Below, one piece after another: positions 42,940 through 59,978 of a stretch of 64,000 nucleotides of DNA. A program made the position numbers and the translations under genes. Positions within the stretch are counted from its first letter, which is position 1; every line of letters starts with the position of its first letter. Location: IMG/VR virus record IMGVR_UViG_3300021137_000001, positions 265,322 to 329,321 of that record; one strand, 5' to 3'. The notes below the pieces were generated by a model, which was given only the letters and a program-made list of their open reading frames with translations, did not search any database and was not told the origin of the DNA.

Positions 42940-43530
42940 ATGGCTAAAAGAAGAATATTTACAGAGGACGAATTGAATTTAATCATTGATTTACAACGGT
43001 CGGTTACTGAGATATGCTTACTAGTTAGTGCATCACATCCAACAATAACTAAGATCAGAAAAGAGGTAGGTATCGTTACTATTAGAGGTAGGAGAGGTGG
43101 GTCTGTTGTTCCGTCTCAACGAAGAACTATTTACTGTGTATGCCAGAATGCGGCGTGTAAAAAAGAATTCGAATCAATAAAATCAACTCCTCGTAAATTT
43201 TGTAGCCACACGTGCCAACAACGAGCTGCAAATGTTGCTGCAAAAGGAATCGGTTCAAGAAAAATGCGTAACCCTAACACTCCTGTATATAAAAAATATG
43301 CTAGAATAGTACATGGGATGAGTCATAAGATATATTTGTCAAACATAGCTATTATTAACCCTAATGGATATGTTAGAACATTATGCGGAGTTAAAGATGG
43401 ATGGCAATTAGATCATATCATTCCTATTAAGGAATGTTTTGAAAGAAATATACCCCCAGAAGAGGCAGCTAGTATTAATAATCTTAGGATGCTTCCATGG
43501 AAAGATAATTTAATGAGACAATATAAATAA
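42940..43530 (+). CDS. HNH endonuclease (N-terminal HTH and Zn-finger, C-terminal HNH)
   Basis: C..AACKKEF...RKFCSHTC; WQLDHIIP...NLRMLPWKDN; own TATAAATA at 42914-42921 and AGGAG RBS. Confidence 0.8.
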   Translation: MAKRRIFTEDELNLIIDLQRSVTEICLLVSASHPTITKIRKEVGIVTIRGRRGGSVVPSQRRTIYCVCQNAACKKEFESIKSTPRKFCSHTCQQRAANVAAKGIGSRKMRNPNTPVYKKYARIVHGMSHKIYLSNIAIINPNGYVRTLCGVKDGWQLDHIIPIKECFERNIPPEEAASINNLRMLPWKDNLMRQYK

Positions 43531-45302
43531 TGGCATTCCGTATAAAAAATCTTACCGTGAAAAATTTCATGAGTGTTGGTAATGCAACGCAAGCAGTGGA
43601 CTTTGATCGCAATGATCTCACGTTAGTGCTTGGTGTCAATGTTGATTTAGGTGGTGACGACAGCGGCGCACGTAACGGCACTGGTAAAACAACTATCATC
43701 AATGCGTTAAGCTACAGTTTGTTTGGGCAAGCGTTGACTAATATTAAACGTGATAACTTAATTAATAAAACTAATGGTAAGAACATGTTAGTCACAGTTG
43801 AGTTCGAACATAACGGGCAAGATTATAAGATTGAGCGTGGACGTAAGCCAAACGTAATGAAGTTTTACGTGGGTGATGAAGAAAAAGAAATTACAGACGA
43901 ATCGCAAGGTGATAGCAGAGAAACGCAAGCTGAGATTGAGCGTATGTTAAGCATGAAGCATGATATGTTTAAACACATTGTTGCTCTTAACACGTACACT
44001 GAACCGTTCCTTAGTTTAAAGTCGGGTGATCAACGTGAGATCATCGAGCAGCTACTCGGTATTACTATGCTTAGTGAAAAGGCTGAGAATTTAAAAGAGT
44101 TGACTCGTGCTACAAAGGATGCAATTCAGCAAGAAGAATACAGTATTAAGGCGATTGCAGACGCAAACGGACGCATAAAAGAACAAATTGAGAGCTTAAT
44201 TCGTCGACAAAATATGTGGACTACTAAGCACACAGATGATGCAGCAAAGTTAGAAAATGCGTTAGCAGAGTTGCATAAAATTGATATTGAACAAGAACTT
44301 GCAGCACACACTGCGCTTACTGCATATAATCAACAGCGCAAAGACTTAGATGATTTGGGTAAAGCTATATTGCGTGGTGAGGCAGATATTGCTCGCGAAC
44401 AAAAAACTATAGACAAAGTTACTAAAGAAATTGCCGATTTAGAAGCGCACACTTGCTATGCTTGCGGGCAACATTTTCATGATGATAAACATGAGTCGGT
44501 ATTAGCGGCTAAACGTGTTTCACTTGAAACCGCAACAAATCAATATTTGTCAGATCAATCACAGTTGCTTGCACTTACTGGTGCTAAGGCAGAAATTGGT
44601 GCCCTTGGTGCACAACCTCGAGTATATTATGATAAAGAAGCAGATGCATTCCATCATAAAGGTTCAATTACTAGTTTAGAAACACAGTTAGCAACTAAGA
44701 GTGCGGAAGTTGACCCATATGCTGAACAGATTGAAGAAATGACGCATACTGCTATGGCAGAAACTGATTTTACTACAATGAATGAGCTCGTTAAGTTAAA
44801 GGAACATCAAGACTTCTTGTTAAAACTATTAACTAACAAAGATAGCTTTATCCGTAAGCGTATTATTGATCAGAACTTGTCGCATCTAAACGCAAGATTA
44901 AGTCAATACTTAGATCGCATCGGATTGCCACACACAGTAACGTTCTTAAATGATTTAAGCGTTGAAATTACAGAGCTTGGGCGCGAGTTAGACTTTGATA
45001 ATTTATCACGTGGTGAACGTAATCGCTTGATCTTAAGTTTAAGCTGGGCGTTCCGTGATGTGTGGGAGAGTTTATACAATCCGATTAACTTATTGTTTAT
45101 TGATGAGCTTATTGATAGTGGCATGGACAGTAGCGGAGTTGAAAGTTCACTAGGCATACTTAAAAAGATGTCGCGTGAACATGAGAAAAGTATTTGGCTT
45201 GTTTCGCACAAAGACGAACTTGCGGGTCGTGTAAACAATATCATGACTGTAACAAAAGAGAATGGGTTTACTACATACAGCACCGACGTTGAAGTAATTT
45301 AA
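43530..45302 (+). CDS. gp46: Recombination ATPase subunit, gp46/Rad50/SbcC-like
   Basis: Walker A RNGTGKTT, coiled coil with CYAC Zn-hook, signature LSRGE, Walker B LLFIDE, H-loop VSH. Confidence 0.93.
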   Translation: MAFRIKNLTVKNFMSVGNATQAVDFDRNDLTLVLGVNVDLGGDDSGARNGTGKTTIINALSYSLFGQALTNIKRDNLINKTNGKNMLVTVEFEHNGQDYKIERGRKPNVMKFYVGDEEKEITDESQGDSRETQAEIERMLSMKHDMFKHIVALNTYTEPFLSLKSGDQREIIEQLLGITMLSEKAENLKELTRATKDAIQQEEYSIKAIADANGRIKEQIESLIRRQNMWTTKHTDDAAKLENALAELHKIDIEQELAAHTALTAYNQQRKDLDDLGKAILRGEADIAREQKTIDKVTKEIADLEAHTCYACGQHFHDDKHESVLAAKRVSLETATNQYLSDQSQLLALTGAKAEIGALGAQPRVYYDKEADAFHHKGSITSLETQLATKSAEVDPYAEQIEEMTHTAMAETDFTTMNELVKLKEHQDFLLKLLTNKDSFIRKRIIDQNLSHLNARLSQYLDRIGLPHTVTFLNDLSVEITELGRELDFDNLSRGERNRLILSLSWAFRDVWESLYNPINLLFIDELIDSGMDSSGVESSLGILKKMSREHEKSIWLVSHKDELAGRVNNIMTVTKENGFTTYSTDVEVI

Positions 45303-45357: not shown

Positions 45358-45543
45358 ATGGCAATTCATGATGATATTTTAGCAGCAGTAGAATTATACG
45401 TTTCAGAATCAGAAAAATTTGAAGTTAAAGGTGTTAAAGCTGCAGCGGCACGTGCTCGCGGTGCATTAGGCGATTTAGGTAAGTTAACTAAAGCTCGTCG
45501 TGCAGAAATTCAAACCAAAAAGAACGAACTGTCCGCTAAGTAA
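45358..45543 (+). CDS. Small basic protein resembling histone H1-like Hc1 family DNA-binding proteins
   Basis: KF..KGVKAAAARAR.AL..L.KL.K..R.EIQ pattern; AAGGAG RBS; TAAATA at 45327-45332. Confidence 0.6.
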   Translation: MAIHDDILAAVELYVSESEKFEVKGVKAAAARARGALGDLGKLTKARRAEIQTKKNELSAK

Positions 45544-45634: not shown

Positions 45635-46213
45635 ATGAATATTTATTACGTATACCAGTACCTTAGAGAAAAGGATTCGTCTACTGCTCTAGCAGGTACA
45701 CCATACTATATAGGAAAAGGTAAGAACAACCGAGCATATATAGGACACAATAATAGAATACCTTCAAATAAAGAATATATTCAAATTATTAAAGATAATT
45801 TAACTGAACAAGAAGCAATGGACCTTGAAATTATGCTAATTAAAAAATATGGTCGTAAAGATTTAGTAACAGGTATTTTAATAAATCTTTCAAACGGCGG
45901 CGAAGGAGCAAGCGGATCTGTTCGTTCGCAAGAGCACAAGACACGTATATCTCAAGCACAAACAGGAAAAATTGTTTCAGATTCAACAAGAGAAAAATTA
46001 AGTAAGGCATTATCAGGTAAAAAACGATCAGATATTGCTAAGTTTAATATTAGCAAAGCACACATAGGTCAAGTTCCTTGGAATAAAAACATACAAATGA
46101 CAGAAGAGTGGAAGGCAAAACGCCCTTGGCATAGTTGTGATATTTGTGGTATTCAATCCCAAAACCTTACTAATATTAAAAGATTTCACAATAGCAATTG
46201 TAAAAATAAATAG
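45635..46213 (+). CDS. Free-standing GIY-YIG homing endonuclease (paralog of 39559..40236)
   Basis: YYVYQY...GTPYYIGKG...YGRKD..GIL.N...GGEG; NUMOD3-like repeats; C-terminal CDIC..H..C. Confidence 0.88.
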   Translation: MNIYYVYQYLREKDSSTALAGTPYYIGKGKNNRAYIGHNNRIPSNKEYIQIIKDNLTEQEAMDLEIMLIKKYGRKDLVTGILINLSNGGEGASGSVRSQEHKTRISQAQTGKIVSDSTREKLSKALSGKKRSDIAKFNISKAHIGQVPWNKNIQMTEEWKAKRPWHSCDICGIQSQNLTNIKRFHNSNCKNK

Positions 46214-46217
46214 CATT

Positions 46218-46670
46218 ATGGCATATGATAATCCCTGGATCTATAATGGTACAACTTTTGATTCAGGGGATATCGGTGAATACTACGGCTTCATTTATAG
46301 AATAACTAATATCACTAACGGACACGATTATGTGGGCCGCAAATATTTTAAAACTATTAAAAAAAGACCACCACTAAAAGGTAAGAAGAACAAACGTTTA
46401 GAAACAATTGAAACTGATTGGAAAGACTATTGGGGTTCATCAAATCGTTTAGTAGCAGATATACTAGCACTAGGTAAAGAACAGTTTACCCGTGAAATTA
46501 TACATTTATGTAAAAGTCGCGGTGAAACTAACTATATGGAAGCGCATTATCAATTTAAAGAAGAAGTACTGTTAAGGGAAGATAACTATAATGGTATTAT
46601 ACAACTTAAACTAGGTAAAAACTCCGTTAAAGATGTAAAAATTAATAAATCAGTTGACCAACGACACTAA
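46218..46670 (+). CDS. Compact GIY-YIG nuclease without DNA-binding repeats
   Basis: W.YNG...YGFIYRITN..NG..YVGRK...ETDWKDYWGSS...FTREII.LC...YN. Start at MAYDNPW, following TAAATA-N5 (track gives 46137). Confidence 0.8.
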   Translation: MAYDNPWIYNGTTFDSGDIGEYYGFIYRITNITNGHDYVGRKYFKTIKKRPPLKGKKNKRLETIETDWKDYWGSSNRLVADILALGKEQFTREIIHLCKSRGETNYMEAHYQFKEEVLLREDNYNGIIQLKLGKNSVKDVKINKSVDQRH

Positions 46671-46682
46671 ACGTAATACAAT
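46654..46682 (+). promoter_or_regulatory. Sigma70-type promoter facing the endonuclease and structured RNA region
   Basis: TTGACC-17 nt-TACAAT. Confidence 0.55.
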
Positions 46683-46792
46683 AAACACATAACTCACACA
46701 GACACCAAGTCGCTCTCATAGAAACAAATTCCAACTCCGTAATAAAGTAGTAAATGTTTTAACCGCAGGTGGAACAAGTGATAAATAACTGT

Positions 46793-47467
46793 ATGAACTA
46801 TACCGAATTAATCACCGAAGAAATACGTAGTAAATTTAAACCCACTTGGCTTTATATTAAGCAACACAATGATACAGGATTACAGTATTTTGGTAAGACT
46901 ATTGTAGCAGATCCATTTAAATATAAAGGATCAGGCACTAGATGGTTATATCATTTAAACTTACATCATAATAATGTAACCACAGTCTGGTGTAAGTTAT
47001 TCACAGATGTTGATCAATTAGTAGCATACGCTATTGATTTTTCGCTTAATAATAATATTGTAGAATCAGATAAGTGGGCAAATTTAATTATTGAAAATGG
47101 GTTAGATGGAGGAACAACACCATCCGACTGTACTAAAGAAAAAATGAGATTAGCGAATACTGGTAGAAAATATTCAGAAGAAACAAAACAAAAAATTAGA
47201 GCCACAAAGGCAAATTATGTAATAACAGAAGAGACTAGAAAAAAAATGTCACTTGCCCAAAAAGGCAGAATAGTTTCAGAAGAAACAAAACAAAAATTAA
47301 AAAGAACTAATACCGGCAAAAAACACCACATTAGTTCAATCGAAAAGATGAAGGTTAGTAGAAGTGAAGTTGTTTATAAATCGGTTGTTTGCCCGCATTG
47401 TGGTAAAGAAGGCGCAATAAACAATATGCCTAGATATCATTTTGATAAATGTAAGGCTAAGAAATAA
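46793..47467 (+). CDS. Free-standing GIY-YIG homing endonuclease with NUMOD3 repeats and C-terminal Zn motif
   Basis: LYIKQH..TGL.YFGKT..DP..Y.GSG..W; NL..ENGLDGG; SEETK.K repeats; CPHCGKEG...HFDKC. Start at the ATG after TAAATA-N5 (track gives 46769). Confidence 0.85.
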   Translation: MNYTELITEEIRSKFKPTWLYIKQHNDTGLQYFGKTIVADPFKYKGSGTRWLYHLNLHHNNVTTVWCKLFTDVDQLVAYAIDFSLNNNIVESDKWANLIIENGLDGGTTPSDCTKEKMRLANTGRKYSEETKQKIRATKANYVITEETRKKMSLAQKGRIVSEETKQKLKRTNTGKKHHISSIEKMKVSRSEVVYKSVVCPHCGKEGAINNMPRYHFDKCKAKK

Positions 47468-47468
47468 A

Positions 47469-48030
47469 ACAGACACTGATGAGGATTTTATATCCTTGCT
47501 GTATGAGGAGATTTCGGTCGCGTAATGGCCCCGAATGGAACCGTTAGACTAGACTAACGACGCAGCGTCAAACAAACCGTATTGCGCTATAAAAAGCGAA
47601 TAACAATATAAAATTAGGCTTAAAAGCCGAATGAATTGGGCACTGTGAAAAAGATACAACCCATAAGCATACTATAGTTGGCTAACTACGGCTATGGGTG
47701 CTACCGTCGTAAGAAGCAAGAGTAGGGAGTACAGGGCGACCGCTTCCGTAATAATATGTATATTATAATATATAAAAAGCAAGTAAGATAACAAGACTTT
47801 ATATATTATAGTGTATAATTTACACATCTCTTTTAGTTAGTATGATAGAAGAACTCGGATGAAGTTTTCTGTTATGCTTTGCCTTTAGTGGGTGAAGTAT
47901 GACTGTAATCTGGATGAAGCAGTATTAAAGTCAAAAGCAATACAGTAAGTATCAAAGTAATTTAGAATATATAAATTAGAAGAAAAAGCATTAAGCGAAG
48001 CGTAAATGCGAATGTCGTAAGACATTCTTT
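47469..48030 (+). ncRNA. Candidate large structured non-coding RNA (family unassigned)
   Basis: ~620 bp with no tracked ORF in a gene-dense genome; succession of stems, several with G-U pairs on the plus strand (see findings). Confidence 0.5.
48010..48030. terminator. Hairpin at the convergence point, likely terminator
   Basis: GAATGTC-GTAA-GACATTC-TTT (7-bp perfect stem, GNRA loop) between convergent transcription units. Confidence 0.5.
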
Positions 48031-48089
48031 AAAGTGTTTCTAAATTAGATAATATGTTTTATGCTCTAATAACGACTTTAGCTTACGTA

Positions 48090-48836
48090 TTATCTATTTG
48101 CATATTTGGCTATACGTGCTTCTGATATTGCTTTTTTATGTGCTTCTGACTTTGGTTTACGCATCTTTTGTTTTGTTTCTTCACTTTTTGGCGGTAACTT
48201 TTTTCCTTTATTAATCGCAGAAAGTTTAGCTTTAGTTTCATCGGACATAACTCTACCTTTACCTGCTGCAGATATTTTTGCTGATATTATATTCTTTTCT
48301 TCTTGAGAATATTTTTTTGCTACTCTTCCTTTTTGAGCAATACTCATACGTTCTTTCTGTTCCGCTGTTCTTTTTTTACCTATACAAGATGCACTACGTT
48401 TATCTATAGTTTCTTGCGAATGTACTCTTCCTTTTCCTGCTGCAGATATTTTAGCTTTCTGTTCCGCCGACATAGTCCGACCTGTAAGTCGAGCAGAATG
48501 TATTTTACTAAATTCTTCTTTAAGATTAGCAAATACACGACTGGTAATTTTAGTAATATATCGTTCTTGTTGATGAGTGCGTGATACCCGTCGCATACCA
48601 TTTAATGCATATATCATTTTTTCACGATTGCTACCTGTTGTTATTTTAATTAACAACCAATGACATATAAAATGCTCTCGCCCTGACAAATGAACAAGAT
48701 TATTCTTGCTATCTTGTCCTCCGATTGATTTCGGTATGATATGATGCTTTTCACTGTAAGAAAGCGGTGTTGATCTCAATTGCGCATTACTGACAATTGC
48801 ATCATACCACCGCTTGTATTTGTTTTTAATAAACAT
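48090..48836 (-). CDS. Free-standing HNH homing endonuclease with NUMOD3 repeats
   Basis: YSEKHHIIPKSIGG.D...NLV.L..REHFICHWLL; repeated K.KISAA.KGR; TAAATA at 48860-48855. Confidence 0.88.
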   Translation of the reverse strand: MFIKNKYKRWYDAIVSNAQLRSTPLSYSEKHHIIPKSIGGQDSKNNLVHLSGREHFICHWLLIKITTGSNREKMIYALNGMRRVSRTHQQERYITKITSRVFANLKEEFSKIHSARLTGRTMSAEQKAKISAAGKGRVHSQETIDKRSASCIGKKRTAEQKERMSIAQKGRVAKKYSQEEKNIISAKISAAGKGRVMSDETKAKLSAINKGKKLPPKSEETKQKMRKPKSEAHKKAISEARIAKYANR

Positions 48837-49118: not shown

Positions 49119-49964
49119 TTATGCGAAAAAACTTGTTTGATTGAACTCCAATTTAACTTTATATGATTTCTCACATTCATTGCATACTAGTTCTACTGGC
49201 TCTAATGCGTTGGCACCAACAGTTTCTTCGATTAGTAACTTTACACCATCATATGTTTTTCTATCTGTGTTGACTAAAAAGTCTTGTATTAACACAGCTT
49301 CAGCTACTTTAATTCCATCTTCAGTTGTAATAGATTCTATACATGATACTAGTGTACCTATGTTAAGTTCAGTCAACTTATCAAATGCTTCTTGGAATAG
49401 TTTTTGTTTTTCCGTTTCCTCTAAGTCACTGCTAGAAATAACACTAACTAATTTTTGCTGTTCGAATGATATTAATCCTACGCGATTTAAATCATTGTAC
49501 GTTTGTGGTTTTAATTTAAACAGTAAACCATTTAAATGAGTTGATTCTGTGTATTTTCTTAACGGTGCTACGTTGTCTAATACATGGCGTAAATCGACTG
49601 TGTGTTCGTTTTCTCCTTGACAATGTGGGCAAGTACTGGTCATATCCATGCCACTACCGTAACTTGCTAGCCTAATTGCAATTAAGATAGAATCTAAATC
49701 AATTAATGGAATAATCCACGGATCTTTAATATTAGGACAACAGCTGGCAATCATATCACGCATGCCTGCACCGTTCATTAGTGCATCTGGTGTTTTTAAT
49801 AAAATTTCGTCTTTAATTGTCATTGGGTAAATTGGAATTTCACCAGTTAGTGATATGTCTAATGAACCTTGCGGGTAAAACTTACCACCGCTGGGTAGTT
49901 TTAAATAAATTGAAGGCTGTCTGAAATGACTTGCTAGCGGATTATTTGCTATTGAATTGCTCAT
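49119..49964 (-). CDS. gp26: Baseplate hub assembly protein / tail assembly chaperone, gp26-like
   Basis: NPL..HFRQP.IY.KLPSGG.FY...PMT.KDEI.LKTPDAL.NG...DLD.ILIAIR.ASYG...CPHC...C.EC. Start at MSNSIA after GGAG (track gives 50084). Confidence 0.8.
   Translation of the reverse strand: MSNSIANNPLASHFRQPSIYLKLPSGGKFYPQGSLDISLTGEIPIYPMTIKDEILLKTPDALMNGAGMRDMIASCCPNIKDPWIIPLIDLDSILIAIRLASYGSGMDMTSTCPHCQGENEHTVDLRHVLDNVAPLRKYTESTHLNGLLFKLKPQTYNDLNRVGLISFEQQKLVSVISSSDLEETEKQKLFQEAFDKLTELNIGTLVSCIESITTEDGIKVAEAVLIQDFLVNTDRKTYDGVKLLIEETVGANALEPVELVCNECEKSYKVKLEFNQTSFFA
49125..49131 (-). other. Predicted programmed -1 ribosomal frameshift site (T TTT TTC)
   Basis: AGT TTT TTC GCA TAA; the -1 frame reads TTT CGC ATA AGG CTT TTG AGT CAA, continuous with ORF 48895..49113. 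Confidence 0.7.
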
Positions 49965-50024
49965 AGGGGTTTTAAACTCCATAAATATACTATGTAATAC
50001 CATATATTTATTTGGATAAAACCC

Positions 50025-52178
50025 ATGGCAATTAAAATAGACATTCCTGGCTTCGGCGAAGTTACTGTAGAAGGAGCTGCACAAGAGGATACAATGCAGG
50101 CCATCCTTGCAGCTGTTAATAAAACAGACAAAAGCAAAGCCGCCGACGAAAAGAAAAATAAAAAAGCCACAGACGATGCCGCTAAATCCGCAGCGACTAT
50201 GGCACTAGGATTAGATGACGCTGTAGAAGCTGCCAAAAAAGCAACAAAAGAAGAAAAATTAAGAACTGACAAACGTGAGAAAGAAATAAAACACGCTACT
50301 AAAGAAGCGATAGCGCAAGTTGGCAACTTTGGAGTTGCTCTTGCATCAACTGCAGCCAGTGTTGCAACTAGCATGATTAAAAACATTGATGCAAATGCAG
50401 AAAATCCAATTGCTTTAGGTGCCGGGCTTATTAATACTGGCCTTGACATGGTCGGAGCTGCACTTAAAATTGGGGTCGATGTTATTTCATCATTTACTGG
50501 CGCATTAGCTGGTGCAATACCTGTTGTTGGCGGTGGAGCACAACGACTCAATGACGGACTTGCAAATGTAGCAAAAGAAGTAATTGACTTTGGTGTGCAA
50601 GTTGCTAAAGCTGCAAATGACTTTATGGCCGCAGAGTTTGAAAAAACTGCTGCATCGATGAAAGCAATGACAGCATCAGGCGCAAGTTTTGCTGGCGGCA
50701 TGACAGAATTACGGCAAATTGCAAATGACAGTGGAGTTGGGTTGACTGTATTTACTAAAGTAGTACAAAATAGTCAAAATTATCTACACACATTTGGTAT
50801 AACCGCAACAGAATCAACAGCGTTAGTGTCATTGGGAATGAAAACATTAGCAAATACCACACGAACTGTGAATGGTGTGCAAATGAAAGCACGTGATCAA
50901 CTATTAAATCTAGGCTATAGCTATGAAGAACAAGGTGAGATCATGTCACAGTACATGGTATCACAAAAATTAGCAGGGAAAAATCTTGCTGATATGACGC
51001 CAAAAGCATTAACTGATGGTGTATTAGAATATGCAAAAAACTTAAAGGTTATTAGTGATATAACTGGTCAAGATGCTAAGAAGTTAATGGAAAAAGCGCA
51101 AGCAGAAACCATGCGCGGAGCAATGCTTGGTAAGTTAGATGAAAAACAATCTAAGGCATACGCCGAGTCATATGCTGTATTATCAAAAGCAGGTCCTGAA
51201 ATGGGTGCTAAAATGCAAATTGCATTAACACAAATAATGTCAGGTAATGCTATTACAGATCCTATTATTGCTGGTAATAGAACTGTAATGGATATGTTAC
51301 ATAAGACTGCAAGTGAAGCTATGGAAGGTCAAACTGGCATGGCAGCTAAAACTTTTGATAATATGCAAGAGGCAGGCGCAAATATTAAAAAATTCGGTGA
51401 ACGAGCAACCGATACTGCTGCATTAGAAGGAGTAATGGATCCTACAGTTAAAGGATTTGCGGAATTAAATAATTCATTAATAATGCTAACACCTGCTATG
51501 GCAGCATCAGGTACAGCCTCAGAAATCGCAGCCAAAGCACAATCTGAAACTACAGACAAAGTATCACAAGATTTTGCTAAAGCATCAAACTCTGCAGCTC
51601 ATTTTGGGGTAGCATTAGAAACAATTGCTACAGATAATATGGCTGCTTATGCTGATGTATTAGTAAAAGCAATTGGAGTAACACAAACTGCAATCCAAGA
51701 TGGTATTGCAGCATCGTTAGATTTTAAAAAGTGGGCTGCAGCTAAAGGTAAAGAACTAGCAGAAACGGGTCCAGAAAAAGAAATGAGTACTGGGCGTAAA
51801 ATATTAGATTATGGAGCAACAGCAATTGGTGCAACTGCTGGTGCATTAATAGGTGGAGGTACAACTGCCGGTCTCGGTACTGTTGTTGGCGGAGTTGCTG
51901 GTGGTAGTTTAGGGCATGAAGCAGGCTCGTGGGCTGCTGATAAATTAGGATTTGCTAAAGGAGGTATTGCATCAGGATCAATTGGCGGCTATCAAGAGTT
52001 ACTGCACGGTACAGAAGCAGTTGTACCATTACCAGACGGTAAATCAATACCAGTTAGCTTAGATAGTAGTTCATTAAATGCATCGATACAACAACAAACT
52101 ATGATTTTAAATGGAATACTTGCGGCAATGAATAAAAATAATCATCTATCGTCTGGAATATTACAGAACAGTTACTAA
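50025..52178 (+). CDS. Tape-measure-like protein (gp29-equivalent)
   Basis: Ala-rich helical protein with glycine-zipper/hydrophobic segments, C-terminal FAKGGI..G...LHGTEAVVPLPDG; adjacent to the chaperone pair. Confidence 0.7.
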   Translation: MAIKIDIPGFGEVTVEGAAQEDTMQAILAAVNKTDKSKAADEKKNKKATDDAAKSAATMALGLDDAVEAAKKATKEEKLRTDKREKEIKHATKEAIAQVGNFGVALASTAASVATSMIKNIDANAENPIALGAGLINTGLDMVGAALKIGVDVISSFTGALAGAIPVVGGGAQRLNDGLANVAKEVIDFGVQVAKAANDFMAAEFEKTAASMKAMTASGASFAGGMTELRQIANDSGVGLTVFTKVVQNSQNYLHTFGITATESTALVSLGMKTLANTTRTVNGVQMKARDQLLNLGYSYEEQGEIMSQYMVSQKLAGKNLADMTPKALTDGVLEYAKNLKVISDITGQDAKKLMEKAQAETMRGAMLGKLDEKQSKAYAESYAVLSKAGPEMGAKMQIALTQIMSGNAITDPIIAGNRTVMDMLHKTASEAMEGQTGMAAKTFDNMQEAGANIKKFGERATDTAALEGVMDPTVKGFAELNNSLIMLTPAMAASGTASEIAAKAQSETTDKVSQDFAKASNSAAHFGVALETIATDNMAAYADVLVKAIGVTQTAIQDGIAASLDFKKWAAAKGKELAETGPEKEMSTGRKILDYGATAIGATAGALIGGGTTAGLGTVVGGVAGGSLGHEAGSWAADKLGFAKGGIASGSIGGYQELLHGTEAVVPLPDGKSIPVSLDSSSLNASIQQQTMILNGILAAMNKNNHLSSGILQNSY

Positions 52179-52212: not shown

Positions 52213-53922
52213 ATGGCTGGATGGAAAAAACATTTTAGAACTGCAAACACTAGTGGACAAATGAGTCCGATTGGCAACAATTCATCTGCTGATCCAAGCT
52301 ATCGTAATTTTGCCAGTCAACTACCTGAAGTATATATCGGGCACCCAAATCGTACTGAACGTTATAATCAGTATGAGCAAATGGATATGGATAGTGAAGT
52401 CAATGCTGCACTTGATATTATTGCAGAGTTTTGTTCACAACCTAACACAGAAAATGGCACAGGCTTTGATTTATACTTTAAAGAAAAGCCAACAGACAAC
52501 GAAATCAAACTACTTAAAGATCAACTGCTACAGTGGGTTAATCTAAATCAATTAAACAAACGCTTATTTAAACTTGTACGTAATACATTAAAGTATGGCG
52601 ATCAAGTATTCTTACGTGATCCGGAAACATTTAAGTTATACTGGACAGAAATGGGCAGTGTAATCAAAGTTATTGTTAATGAAGCAGAAGGCAAAGAGCC
52701 AGAGCAATATGTAATTAAAAATCTTAATCTTAACTTTCAAAACTTAACTGCTACTGCATTAAGTTCAAGCGATACATATACAAATCACCCGCAACAAGGT
52801 GGTAGTGGTGGACAAGGTTCTTATGTACAACCTAATGTTCCGTACAGTGGCGGTTCACGCTTTAGTCATGCGCAAAACGAAGCAGTGCTAAATGCAGAAC
52901 ACGTTGTACATATTAGTTTAACAGAGGGCTTGGATGTAAACTGGCCGTTTGGTACTAGTATTCTTGAAAGTATATTTAAAATCTTTAAACAAAAAGAATT
53001 GTTAGAAGATGCTATTATTATCTACCGCGTACAACGTGCGCCAGAAAGACGTGTATTTAAAATTGATGTTGGTAATATGCCAACCCACATGGCTATGGCG
53101 TTTGTGGACAGAATTAAAAATGAAGTACATCAACGTCGCATACCAACACAAACTGGTGGCGGTGCAAATATGATGGATGCAACATACAATCCACTATCAA
53201 CAAATGAAGACTTTTTCTTCCCAGTTGGCGCAGAAGGGCGCGGTTCAACAGTCGAAGCATTGCCGGGTGGTAGCAACTTAGGTGAGATTACAGACTTACG
53301 TTTCTTTACTAATAAAATGTTCCGTGGCTTACGTATTCCTAGTAGTTACTTGCCGACTGGTGCAGATGATAGTTCATCTACATTTAATGACGGACGTGGT
53401 ACTACGGCGTTAATTCAAGAATGGCGCTTTAATCAATACTGTATGCGTTTACAAACTATGATAGTTGAAAAACTAGATAGTGAATTTAAAATGTTTATGC
53501 GCTGGAGAGGTATTAATATTGACGGACAGTTATTTGAATTAAGACTAAACGAACCACAAAACTTTGCAAAATATCGTCAAGCAGAAGTTGATGCAGCACG
53601 TATTACTGCATTTACACAACTAGAAGCAGTTCCTTACTTGAGCAAACGCTTTTTACTTACTAGATACTTAGATTTAAGTGAAGAAGAAATGCAACAAAAT
53701 GACGAGATGTGGGCAGAAGAACACGAAGATAGTGCTGCACCAGTTGATACTGATGCTGGCTTACGTGCTGTTGGAGTAACACCAGCAAGTATCGAAGGCG
53801 ATATGAGTAATTTAGAGATGCCTGAAATACCAGCAGAAGGTGAACCAGCACCAGAAGCTGGTGGATTACCTCCACCGACGGGTGTACCGCCTGCATCAGC
53901 TCCTCCACCAGCCGGAATGTAA
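52213..53922 (+). CDS. gp20: Portal protein, T4 gp20-like
   Basis: MDMDSEVNAALDII; KQKELLEDAIIIYRVQRAPERRVFKIDVGNMP; EDFFFP...GS.VE.LPGG.NLGEI.D..FF..K..RGLRIP.S. Confidence 0.95.
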   Translation: MAGWKKHFRTANTSGQMSPIGNNSSADPSYRNFASQLPEVYIGHPNRTERYNQYEQMDMDSEVNAALDIIAEFCSQPNTENGTGFDLYFKEKPTDNEIKLLKDQLLQWVNLNQLNKRLFKLVRNTLKYGDQVFLRDPETFKLYWTEMGSVIKVIVNEAEGKEPEQYVIKNLNLNFQNLTATALSSSDTYTNHPQQGGSGGQGSYVQPNVPYSGGSRFSHAQNEAVLNAEHVVHISLTEGLDVNWPFGTSILESIFKIFKQKELLEDAIIIYRVQRAPERRVFKIDVGNMPTHMAMAFVDRIKNEVHQRRIPTQTGGGANMMDATYNPLSTNEDFFFPVGAEGRGSTVEALPGGSNLGEITDLRFFTNKMFRGLRIPSSYLPTGADDSSSTFNDGRGTTALIQEWRFNQYCMRLQTMIVEKLDSEFKMFMRWRGINIDGQLFELRLNEPQNFAKYRQAEVDAARITAFTQLEAVPYLSKRFLLTRYLDLSEEEMQQNDEMWAEEHEDSAAPVDTDAGLRAVGVTPASIEGDMSNLEMPEIPAEGEPAPEAGGLPPPTGVPPASAPPPAGM

Positions 53923-58957: not shown

Positions 58958-59039
58958 ATACTATAGTTCACTCTTGAATGAGAGTTTATGCGGTCCCAAC
59001 CGCGTAGATTGTAGAACAATTATATAAAGGAGAAAACAA

Positions 59040-59978
59040 ATGGGACGTCCTATTAAGAAAAAGTTTTTTGGTACAGATAATGTTAATGATGGTTTAGTAT
59101 ACAATGATGCAGGTGGCGAAGGTGTTGCAAGTTTAACACCAACAGCAGGTTCAAACTATTCAGCTGGTGTTACAGCTACGGTAGCATTATCACCAATCGG
59201 TGGAACACGTGCAACAATTAGTTCAGTAACTGTTACAGCAGGCGCAATTGCTTCTGCTACAGTAGGTGTTGCTGGTACAGGTTACACATCGGCTCCAGCA
59301 GTTACATTAGTAAAACCGGGTAATGTAATTGTAACTGGTACTAACGATGCATTTTGGTCAGATGGTTCTAACTTACGTTTATCAAGCACTGCTGGCATTT
59401 ATGTTGGTATGTTTTCAAACGTTGCAGGTAAATCAACTGTTACCGTTTCTACAATCTACACAGATGGTAACATCAGAGGTAGTGCTACATTTGGTAACGT
59501 AACAACTGGTACAGTAATTACATTTGGTGATACTGGTACTGGTGGTGCATTAACAGCAGTTCTTGCTCCAACTACAACATCAGCAAACACAATCCAAGCT
59601 AACGCATGGGTTACTGGTGGTACAATTGGTAAACAAGCTGATATCGTTTCACAACGTAGTTCACGTCGTTACAGAGTTACAAACGCTGACGGTACAAGCA
59701 CAACACGTTTAGTCCCAACATTGTTAAATCTTCCTACAGTTGCAACAGTTATTGCTGCTGGCGGCCCAACAGCAGTAGGCGAAATGACATTATTAGCTAC
59801 TGATAGTGTTGGAGGTGTTTACTTAGTTGGTAAACTTGAAGGACACACAGCTTTATTGTTCCCAGCTGCAATTGGTGGTAGTGCAGGTACGCAATTTGCT
59901 GCAAACTCACAAGTTACATGGACAAGTACTGGTTCGGCAGTTATAAACGTAAGTGTAAAACTTGCAACAAATGACTAA
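59040..59978 (+). CDS. Virion structural protein (possible head decoration)
   Basis: Thr/Gly/Ala-rich, GTGYTSAP.V repeat, strong AAGGAG RBS, own late promoter and terminator, directly after the capsid block. Confidence 0.6.
   Translation: MGRPIKKKFFGTDNVNDGLVYNDAGGEGVASLTPTAGSNYSAGVTATVALSPIGGTRATISSVTVTAGAIASATVGVAGTGYTSAPAVTLVKPGNVIVTGTNDAFWSDGSNLRLSSTAGIYVGMFSNVAGKSTVTVSTIYTDGNIRGSATFGNVTTGTVITFGDTGTGGALTAVLAPTTTSANTIQANAWVTGGTIGKQADIVSQRSSRRYRVTNADGTSTTRLVPTLLNLPTVATVIAAGGPTAVGEMTLLATDSVGGVYLVGKLEGHTALLFPAAIGGSAGTQFAANSQVTWTSTGSAVINVSVKLATND

Follow-up and report, generated by a model that had tools for sequence, protein, structure and literature searches.

A conserved large structured RNA of uncultured freshwater jumbo phages, predicted from compensatory base changes

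The window examined here is a 64,000-nucleotide stretch of the viral record IMGVR_UViG_3300021137_000001, a phage genome of 329 kb, and its longest gap between ORFs of 80 aa or more lies between two convergent inserted homing-endonuclease genes, downstream of genes for a gp46-like recombination nuclease and a GIY-YIG-only nuclease (Table 1). The upstream nuclease was identified by matches to Pfam SegE_GIY-YIG (2e-36) and phrog_447 (7e-40), the homing endonuclease that follows it by matches to NUMOD3 and phrog_314/655, and the downstream endonuclease by HNH and NUMOD3 matches and a match to phrog_655 (4e-42). Neither of these two homing-endonuclease genes is part of the ancestral unit. The first is absent in the related locus L004, where ...TTTTAAC|AGCCC... 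is contiguous, and an RNA-library contig of a relative joins 46763 to 47579 across 102 other letters, that is, without this gene; in place of the second, relatives have a small convergent ORF or the baseplate-hub gene. The GC content of the ORF-free stretch is 0.43–0.49 at 47450–47750, against 0.18–0.37 afterwards and about 0.30–0.35 in the flanks, and no tRNA or tmRNA was found in the window.

Table 1. Features of the locus (window coordinates; loci L004 and L005 are related viral loci)
Positions	Strand	Feature	Elements
43530-45302		gp46-like recombination-nuclease gene	
46137-46670	+	GIY-YIG-only nuclease gene	homology starts near 46230; about 146 aa
46654-46682	+	sigma70-like promoter candidate	TTGACC-17-TACAAT
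46683-46768	+	leader	~85 nt
46769-47467	+	inserted homing-endonuclease gene	
47468-48089		ORF-free stretch	622 nt
47469-48030	+	structured RNA as a whole	conserved span; exact ends unknown
47481-47702	+	clade-specific 5' domain	H1, H2, H3, H5, H6, H7 and a closing helix
47481-97	+	hairpin H1	GAGGAT/ATCCTT, 47481-86/47492-97
~47499-502/47562-65	+	closing helix in the 5' domain	
47513-35	+	hairpin H2	TTCGG/CCGAA, 47513-17/47531-35
47542-59	+	hairpin H3	CGTTAG/CTAACG, 47542-47/47554-59
~47570-47607	+	insert shared only with L004 and L005	contains the CGCT/AGCG hairpin
47617-28	+	hairpin H5	GGC/GCC, 47617-19/47626-28
47636-64	+	hairpin H6	TGGG/CCCA, 47636-40/47660-64
47666-47702	+	hairpin H7	AGCAT..TATAGTTG hairpin, 47666-80/47689-47702; loop GCUAACUA
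47706-47747	+	pseudoknotted core	PK, 47706-10 (GUCGU) with 47736-40 (GCGAC), the latter inside the loop of P_b (47725-29/47743-47)
47719-47831	+	helix P_a	47719-22 (AGAG) with 47828-31 (CUCU); closes a three-way junction with P_b and P_c
47749-47826	+	variable hairpin P_c	~60-nt AT-rich extension with 20-bp stem 47757-76/47798-817
47840-47877	+	twin-loop hairpin 1	stem 47840-50/47867-77; loop holding ACUCGGAUGAAG (47853-64)
47857-64 and 47912-19	+	repeated GGATGAAG	
47877-47897	+	hairpin P_d, between the twin loops	
47898-47925	+	twin-loop unit 2	GUAUGACUG, then AUCUGGAUGAAG (47908-19), then CAGU
47988-48027	+	3' module	P_e (47988-92/48005-09) enclosing the conserved GAGCG.AAGCGAAA-type internal loop; hairpin T (48010-16/48021-27), followed by UUU
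48090-48836	-	inserted HNH homing-endonuclease gene	

A sequence-only reading had proposed that 47469–47960 is a large, heavily structured candidate phage ncRNA under RNA-level selection on the plus strand, and this core claim is supported, although the conserved element is larger than reported and runs on to about 48027. The listed stems given in Table 1 are present, and those of H2, H3, H5, H6 and H7 covary in relatives; however, the 20-bp AT stem and the CGCT/AGCG hairpin are lineage-specific insertions absent from most relatives. While the 20-bp stem has a fold z of -3.7 on + and -1.9 on -, the single-sequence folding energy of the 5' 292 nt is no better than shuffles (z = -1.0 on + and -1.5 on -), and the evidence that this element is more than chance comes from conservation and covariation. 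The sigma70-like site noted in that reading exists and matches 10 of 12 consensus positions, but such sites occur at chance frequency here (13 found against 9.7 expected), and the promoter call is weak.

Searches with nhmmer and with a covariance model (R1) identified one plus-strand homolog downstream of the gp46-like gene in 57 of 77 related loci searched, with scores of 53–151 bits, and the 329-kb genome itself holds one copy. The gap is ORF-free (380–1100 nt) in all of these loci, and a 142–146 aa ortholog of the GIY-YIG-only nuclease, the conserved upstream neighbor of the RNA in all relatives, ends 0–25 nt before the RNA in most of them. The leader sequence is conserved in the related loci L003–L006. 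Column entropy by position modulo 3 was 0.73/0.85/0.75 in the RNA core, against 0.80/0.66/1.32 in the neighboring ORF, showing no codon periodicity, and stops occur in all frames.

At least nine helices and one pseudoknot carry compensatory base changes: none of 500 shuffles reached the observed covariation, 12 pairs carried two-sided changes, and 87–91% of cells paired, against 44–64% when partners were slid. In the 5' domain, H2 (41/41), H3 (54/54) and the inner stem of H7 (77/81) consist almost wholly of standard pairs, with 3–6 covarying pairs each in 9 sequences. In the core, PK showed 262/275 standard pairs in 55 sequences, with two or more pair types at four of its five pairs (pair 5 is UA 28, AU 14, GC 8), and P_b showed 219/220 standard pairs. 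P_a was paired in 49–55 of 55 sequences per position, with 3–5 pair types each once the clade register is respected, and all 5 modelled pairs showed two-sided changes. P_c, in contrast, is a 4–5 bp covarying hairpin in relatives, or is missing, and its expansion in the window is absent both from relatives' DNA and from RNA-library contigs. P_d was 72/72 paired in clade 1 and 96.7% paired, with 4 two-sided covarying pairs, in 57 sequences. P_e was 42/44 paired, with GCA/UGC changing to GCG/CGC, and becomes UUGAU/AUCAA in clade 3; the 3' module had a fold z of -2.9. Notably, the G-U pairs work only on the plus strand: P_b has 26 G-U against 1 A-C, and P_d and P_a have many U-G and G-U pairs.

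The most unusual feature of this RNA is its two hairpin loops, ACUCRGAURAW and AUCURGAURAW, which keep identical letters at three variable positions. They agree at p5 in 54/55 sequences, at p9 in 55/55 and at p11 in 54/55; all 8 haplotypes occur and each is concordant in both loops. On a gp46 tree each position changes 7–9 times per loop, and independent pairs go the same way 16 times and the opposite way 0 times, which implies a common or symmetric partner. Hairpin 1 folds in the window, and in relatives its RUGAC/GUCAY outer stem plus a variable inner stem recurs in single-sequence folds; the ACUG/CAGU closing stem of unit 2 changes to GCUG/CAGC in the related locus L007, but is not consistent in all clades. 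The repeat units are not tandem identical copies. We sought a partner for the loops, yet found no covarying RNA column, no covarying column in the adjacent GIY-YIG protein, no complementary site within 1.5 kb, and no enrichment of the motif or its complement in the 329-kb genome. Other readings fit poorly: GGA becomes AGA in many members, unlike CsrA-type sites; the GA required for a box C/D or k-turn changes; the "spacer" of a mini-CRISPR array would be a conserved hairpin; there is no reading frame for translational bypass or a start-stop signal; block recombination is at odds with the concordance of all 8 haplotypes; and gene conversion is at odds with p2–p4 staying different between the loops.

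We looked for the RNA beyond these contigs. PA5oct and Atu_ph07, the closest cultured relatives by the gp46-like protein (50% and 43% identity), gave no nhmmer or model hit, and the four ncRNAs reported for PA5oct lie elsewhere in its genome. About 500 cultured phages carry the phrog_447 gene, but none of the six whose locus was searched (Melnitz, phiN3, ACP17, Moby, S-SRM01 and Bellamy) has the RNA; most have little or no non-coding space after the gene, and Bellamy has a tRNA cluster in that place. A degenerate core pattern searched against bacterial genomes gave mostly chance matches; only two tiny MAG contigs were real.

Based on these results we are confident that 47469–48030 encodes, on the plus strand, a multi-domain structured RNA of about 550 nt (about 450–480 nt in relatives that lack the window's two insertions), a single-copy gene inherited vertically in a clade of uncultured freshwater T4-like jumbo phages, lying downstream of the GIY-YIG-only nuclease gene and convergent with the baseplate-hub module. 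It combines a clade-specific 5' domain, a universally conserved core with an optional arm P_c, the twin-loop hairpins on either side of P_d, and a 3' hairpin pair that probably ends the transcript, although the latter does not meet the U-tract rule of our terminator scan. Its transcription has not been demonstrated: RNA-library contigs of close relatives span leader-to-core and core-to-twin-loops, but at a depth of 2–3, no higher than the neighboring genes, and could be DNA carry-over. How the RNA acts is a more tentative matter, and we hold our explanation as a whole with less than even confidence. We speculate that the RNA is made as the 3' part of the nuclease-gene transcript, or from a promoter at that gene's end, and acts in trans as a folded scaffold, in which the pseudoknotted core gives a rigid body and the twin loops are two equivalent docking sites for one common partner, such as a dimeric or two-site RNA-binding factor of the phage or its host, or a second copy of the RNA itself. 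This would explain why the loops must stay identical at three positions that are otherwise free to change; however, a dimeric protein that tolerates several letters would not by itself force this identity. The dense cluster of homing-endonuclease genes fits a highly conserved RNA gene, flanked by dispensable spacer, being a good homing target.

A cis-acting role is less likely, but is the strongest of the alternatives: the structure could be a 3' UTR that stabilizes the nuclease mRNA or controls its translation and insulates two convergent transcription units, with the last hairpin a bidirectional terminator. In clades 1 and 3 the conserved RNA begins 0–25 nt after the stop codon, leaving no room for its own promoter, the RNA is never seen without the gene, and in relatives the stop codon of a convergent small ORF abuts hairpin T. 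Yet the six cultured phages examined have the gene without the RNA, the RNA stays intact in the window despite the 700-nt homing-endonuclease gene inserted before it, and 450 or more nt with a pseudoknot and concertedly evolving loops is far more than stability or termination needs. It is also possible, if doubtful, that the RNA self-assembles into a dimer or ring, through kissing of the self-complementary AUCURGAU of loop 2 (whose best complement within 3 kb is itself), through pairing of loop 1 with loop 2 (7 of 8 pairs by hand pairing of the consensus loops), or through a symmetric like-with-like contact, which would demand identity rather than complementarity at p5, p9 and p11. The RNA is, in keeping with this, large, multi-domain and phage-borne. 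Ordinary antiparallel kissing does not predict the parallel changes, however, since G to A in both loops breaks one pair and improves another and p9 and p11 lie outside the palindrome, and there is no Rfam match to the known ornate RNAs. At its most speculative, and improbably, this would be the founding example of a new class of large phage RNA in which G with G, A with A and U with U pairs, within one RNA or between two copies, force the direct repeats to stay identical, a contact detectable by an "identity covariation" that standard covariation tools do not look for; a variant is that the RNA is an obligate partner that targets or gates the bare GIY-YIG nuclease.

A partnership with that nuclease, which the RNA would guide, activate or inhibit in the manner of omega-RNA with TnpB or IscB, or of a type III antitoxin RNA, is in itself unlikely. 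The two are strictly adjacent on the same strand, with the RNA downstream of the nuclease ORF as with TnpB, and the protein is a bare GIY-YIG domain with the conserved GFvY/kYiGkK blocks in place and no DNA-binding domain of its own; against this, the protein family is widespread while the RNA was absent from the six cultured phages, the protein has no extra domain in RNA-bearing phages, none of its columns covaries with the loops, and no guide-like hypervariable segment was seen. A DNA-level element, such as a protein-binding site or a replication origin with a primer or R-loop RNA, of which the sequence-only reading had offered the latter as an alternative, is not supported and appears very unlikely. 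There are two 12-bp direct repeats that evolve in concert, as iterons do, an AT-rich inverted repeat, and a position between divergently organised gene modules, but the helices around and between the repeats show compensatory changes with G-U pairs that work on one strand only, repeat spacing varies from 49 to 60 bp, the AT-rich stem is window-specific, and the global cumulative GC skew peaks at 258.5 kb, 54 kb away, not at 312.8 kb, while local skew just follows gene direction. Least likely is a decayed gene or a remnant of a group I intron or other mobile ribozyme, despite the three homing-endonuclease genes that crowd the locus and the pseudoknotted multi-helix fold: no Rfam intron or ribozyme match appeared even at E up to 10, there is no split host gene, no exons and no plus-strand ORF downstream, and relatives keep the RNA without any homing-endonuclease gene.

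Among known RNAs, the closest is the orphan Polynucleobacter-1 motif (RF01718), which was described downstream of one gene family (GOS11034/phrog_447), rated a likely cis-regulatory element and found in no purified phage (PMC2864571). In a sister clade the first ~140 nt of the orthologous RNA is this motif: RF01718 scored 71–120 bits (gathering threshold 37 bits) at the start of the orthologous region in clade-3 loci and in near-complete 345–354 kb phage records, and these RNAs continue into the core that the window shares (nhmmer E-values from 1e-7 down to about 1e-25 after one iteration; R1 scores of 93.6 bits in the window and 115–147 bits in clade 3). The 141-nt motif is therefore only the first third of a much larger RNA, and its placement in jumbo-phage genomes answers a question left open in 2010. 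The proposal that the RNA is novel is thus only partly right; however, the pseudoknot core, twin loops and 3' module are not part of the described motif and are unmodelled in Rfam, and can now be searched with a covariance model. The window's own 5' domain, moreover, showed no match to RF01718 at the gathering score or at E up to 10, nor did the clade-1 relative L032, scans of both giving only chance-level hits (RAGATH-6, atoC, STnc350, 5.8S fragments). A model built from 20 clade-3 copies (R2; positive control 144 bits), representing two 5' hairpins, GGGAYGGAA, a third hairpin and a multi-stem 3' half, found nothing in window 46000–48500 or in nine clade-1 and clade-2 loci, and only UGGAA plus a hairpin with an AGUAG-type loop look alike by eye.

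The cow-rumen-2 RNA (RF02947) has, by eye, the same order of elements as the core, namely a hairpin with a UAGC-type loop, CCGCC, a long closing helix, GGAGc-ACAGG-AUGAC-CG-auCC and GUAA, and a potential pseudoknot between CCAUC and GAUGA that matches too. This is a lead and not a demonstrated relationship, as the only hit is weak (17 bits against a gathering score of 66, E 1.9, in the relative L045), there is none in the window, and a pattern scan of viral contigs returned no true examples. As with the large ornate bacterial and phage RNAs GOLLD, ROOL, OLE, HEARO and raiA, the RNA described here is large, multi-domain, strongly covarying and often phage-borne, with no known biochemical function, and may self-associate, and it joins the short list of very large, highly structured phage RNAs; however, it matches none of their Rfam models in a whole-window gathering scan or a regional scan at E up to 10, it is not next to tRNAs, the 13 tRNAs of this phage lying 190 kb away, and it has twin loops with identity covariation.

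The 329-kb IMG/VR phage record, of which the window is the last 64 kb, has direct terminal repeats, and Pfam searches identified several marker genes in the window, including a gp46-like recombination nuclease, a T4 baseplate protein, and a T4-type portal (see the table below for all coordinates). The closest cultured phages by the gp46-like protein were PA5oct (50% identity) and Atu_ph07 (43% identity), and the phage is therefore an uncultured T4-like jumbo phage; all sequencing runs that hold the stretch are freshwater or lake metagenomes. The structural-gene block also includes a single ORF of 4196 aa. The stretch in question has no ORF of note, lying between the stop codons of two convergent ORFs, both of which are homing-endonuclease genes, the upstream one with matches to NUMOD3 and phrog_314/655 and the downstream one to HNH plus NUMOD3. 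The rise in GC content in its first half that was noted in the sequence-only reading is real, as are all of the stems listed there and the duplicated GGATGAAG. Folding energy alone was unconvincing for the 5' 292 nt (z of -1.0 on the + strand and -1.5 on the - strand), although it was better for sub-domains, e.g., -3.7 for the AT-rich stem, -2.5 for the twin-loop domain, and -2.9 for the 3' hairpins, as compared with -0.35 for the 5' hairpins.

Coordinates of the features in the window; helices are given as paired segments
Feature	Coordinates	Strand	Remarks
ORF of 4196 aa	16072-28662	-
gp46-like recombination nuclease	43530-45302
Hc1-like ORF	45358-45543	+	61 aa
Homing-endonuclease gene	45635-46213	+
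GIY-YIG gene	46137-46670		homology from about 46230
Promoter-like site	46654-82		TTGACC-17-TACAAT
Homing-endonuclease gene	46769-47467	+
ORF-free stretch	47468-48089
GAGGAGAU	47505-47512		in the 5' domain
Lineage-specific segment	~47570-47607
Pseudoknot	47706-10 with 47736-40
Helix P_a	47719-22 with 47828-31
Helix P_b	47725-29 with 47743-47
Variable arm P_c	47749-47826
AT-rich extension	47767-47825		60 nt
AUCUCUUU	47826-47833		overlaps the 3' strand of P_a
Twin loop 1	47853-64		ACUCGGAUGAAG
Hairpin P_d	47877-84 with 47890-97
Twin loop 2	47908-19		AUCUGGAUGAAG
Helix of the 3' module	47988-92 with 48005-09
Last hairpin	48010-16 with 48021-27
Homing-endonuclease gene	48090-48836	-
T4 baseplate protein	49119-50084	-
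T4-type portal	52213-53922
freshwater-2 RNA (RF02980)	58970-59042	+
ORF at the end of the freshwater-2 match	59040-59978

To examine conservation we fetched 80 viral contigs that encode a relative of the gp46-like protein (65–100% identity). A single-sequence nhmmer search with the ORF-free stretch hit 37 of them and, after one iteration, 65 rows, with every hit on the gp46 strand and downstream of gp46. A covariance model of the core (R1) found one copy in 57 of the 77 loci searched, at 53–151 bits, most of the other loci ending too soon after gp46, and exactly one copy in the window's own genome. Two very short contigs binned into Flavobacteriales and Bacteroidetes MAGs (L166, 1746 nt, and L169, 1507 nt) also carry the RNA core, at 126–131 bits, and are probably phage DNA mis-binned into bacterial MAGs. 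In every relative the hit lies in a 380–1100 nt gap without ORFs of 80 aa or more. Column entropy showed no three-base periodicity in the RNA core (0.73/0.85/0.75), while the neighboring ORF showed it clearly (0.80/0.66/1.32); the RNA is thus about as constrained as first and second codon positions. Two parts of the window's copy are lineage-specific insertions: the AT-rich extension is absent from all relatives, and the segment further 5' is shared only with the related contigs L004 and L005.

Support for the structure came from covariation. On a plain MAFFT alignment of 50 core sequences, 22 proposed pairs were 86.7% paired, as compared with 44–57% when partners were slid; twelve pairs carried two-sided changes and none of 500 shuffles reached the observed covariation score. 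On the model-based alignment of 60 rows the corresponding figures were 90.7% and 51–64%, again with 0 of 500 shuffles. With anchors chosen independently of pairing, the pseudoknot is standard in 262 of 275 cells (its fifth pair being UA 28, AU 14, GC 8, UG 2), helix P_a is paired in 49–55 of 55 sequences at each position with three to five pair types, and helix P_b is paired in 219 of 220 cells, including 26 G-U pairs and one A-C. Hairpin P_d is 97% paired, with four two-sided covarying pairs. The 5' hairpins behave the same way in the nine sequences of clade 1: H2 is 41/41, H3 is 54/54, and the inner stem of H7 is 77/81, each with three to six covarying pairs. As the many G-U pairs would be A-C mismatches on the other strand, the folded molecule is the + strand RNA. 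We also noted that GAGGAGAU in the 5' domain is complementary to AUCUCUUU, which could represent an alternative pairing or switch; however, both segments are invariant in the nine clade-1 sequences, so covariation cannot test this.

The arm P_c is variable, being a 4–5-bp covarying hairpin in clades 1 and 2 and missing in most of clade 3. It is expanded in the window and, differently, in three clade-3 relatives (L022, L023, and L059), which carry an insert of tandem CTATAGTCAA-like units (alignment A2, columns ~190-225) exactly where the window has its AT-rich extension; the P_c site tolerates, or attracts, insertions. The 3' module consists of a helix (GCAUU/AAUGC in clade 1, UUGAU/AUCAA in clade 3) around a conserved GAGCG.AAGCGAAA-type loop, followed by a hairpin. 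In relatives, the stop codon of a small conserved convergent ORF (40–58 aa, ending ...KDNLET.KKS..PFF; L032 14745-14921 (-) and L040 14282-14404 (-)) touches this last hairpin, while in the window the HNH gene occupies the place of this ORF. The hairpin is therefore probably the end of both transcripts, although it failed the U-tract rule of the terminator scan.

The gene upstream of the RNA is a bare GIY-YIG domain with matches to Pfam SegE_GIY-YIG and to phrog_447, the latter labeled "NAD synthetase", which is evidently a misnomer. Just upstream of it, in L004 as well as in the window, is a conserved ORF that in the window matches the chlamydial histone H1-like protein Hc1 (PF07432, 4e-8). 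A tblastn search found the GIY-YIG gene in 505 cultured phage records, mostly T4-like cyanophages; in the six that we opened the RNA is absent, with either no gap after the gene or, in cyanophage Bellamy, a tRNA cluster. The gene therefore does not need the RNA, while the RNA was never seen without the gene. The 13 tRNAs of the phage examined here are in one cluster (genome 117294-123356, outside the window) about 190 kb from the RNA. In the window a homing-endonuclease gene has been inserted exactly between the leader and the RNA, where L004 reads TTTTAAC followed immediately by AGCCC. In all, three homing-endonuclease genes sit within 3.2 kb around the RNA and its upstream gene, and the relatives L004, L032, and L040 have none at these positions; the locus is a homing hot spot.

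The promoter-like site overlaps the end of the GIY-YIG gene, but such sites are at chance frequency in this AT-rich DNA. Three metatranscriptomes hold short contigs of L004-like relatives. One of these contigs, of 344 nt, runs from the leader (46708-63), across 102 other letters, to 47579-47749, and therefore lacks the inserted gene, while one contig in an RNA library and one in a library labeled RNA-Seq but flagged as probably DNA cross the P_c site without the window's extension. The depth is 2–3, no higher than for neighboring genes, and DNA carry-over cannot be excluded; a transcript is therefore plausible but not shown.

Notably, P_d is flanked by two hairpin loops, ACUCGGAUGAAG and AUCUGGAUGAAG, that evolve in concert. 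Across 55 sequences, position 5 is G/G in 42, A/A in 12, and discordant in one; position 9 is G/G in 41 and A/A in 14; and position 11 is A/A in 25, U/U in 29, and discordant in one. Positions 2–4 differ in a fixed way (CUC versus UCU) in all but a few divergent members, and the spacing between the loops varies from 49 to 60 nt. All eight combinations of the three variable letters occur and each is concordant in both loops; therefore exchange of the whole module between phages cannot explain the pattern, and gene conversion would also have homogenized positions 2–4. On a tree of the gp46-like protein, each position changes 7–9 times in each loop, and in phylogenetically independent pairs on supported branches the second loop follows the first 6 of 7 times at position 5 (never opposite), 5 of 5 times at position 9, and 5 of 5 times at position 11. 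Searches for something that tracks these letters identified no other RNA column, no column of the GIY-YIG protein, no complementary site nearby, and no enrichment in the genome. The plain reading is that both loops make the same contact with one partner, or with each other in a symmetric way, although we could not identify which.

Based on these findings we conclude that this is a genuine, conserved, highly structured RNA gene of about 550 nt, with the reservation that its transcription is plausible rather than shown. While its function is unknown, we tentatively favor a trans-acting scaffold with two equivalent docking loops. A cis-acting 3' UTR role appears less likely, and self-assembly less likely still. 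The alternative raised in the sequence-only reading, that the region is a replication origin, was not supported: cumulative GC skew peaks at 258.5 kb and not at the RNA (312.8 kb), local skew simply follows gene direction, the AT-rich stem is not conserved, and the one-strand G-U covariation speaks for RNA.

With regard to known families, nothing in Rfam matched the RNA in the window or in the clade-1 relative L032, although elsewhere in the window there is a full-length match to freshwater-2 RNA (58.6 bits against a gathering score of 49.9), a second orphan freshwater RNA motif in the same phage. The core of one relative, L045, gave a weak match to cow-rumen-2 (17 bits, E-value of 1.9); the order of elements is strikingly similar, but we could not substantiate this relationship. 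In clade-3 relatives, however, the first ~135 nt of the orthologous region matches Polynucleobacter-1 (RF01718), starting at the stop codon of the upstream gene and scoring 71–120 bits against a gathering score of 37, and two of those records are 345–354 kb and 98–99% complete. The 2010 description of this motif (PMC2864571, supplement) stated that it lies downstream of one gene family, with possible homology to a cyanophage P-SSM2 gene, that its 3' half is not always found, and that no purified phage carried it. The Polynucleobacter-1 domain of clade 3 contains a third GGAYGAWG-like element (CC..GGAUGAAGAUCGC; alignment A5 of clade-3 5' domains, columns ~113-122), but its variable letters do not track the twin loops. 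Our own model of this domain (R2) found nothing in the window or in clade-1 and clade-2 loci, and the clades therefore share the core and 3' part but have different, or unrecognizably diverged, 5' domains. The RNA in the window is a divergent ortholog of a larger RNA whose 5' third is known as an orphan Rfam motif in a sister clade, while its conserved core, pseudoknot, and concertedly evolving twin loops are undescribed.
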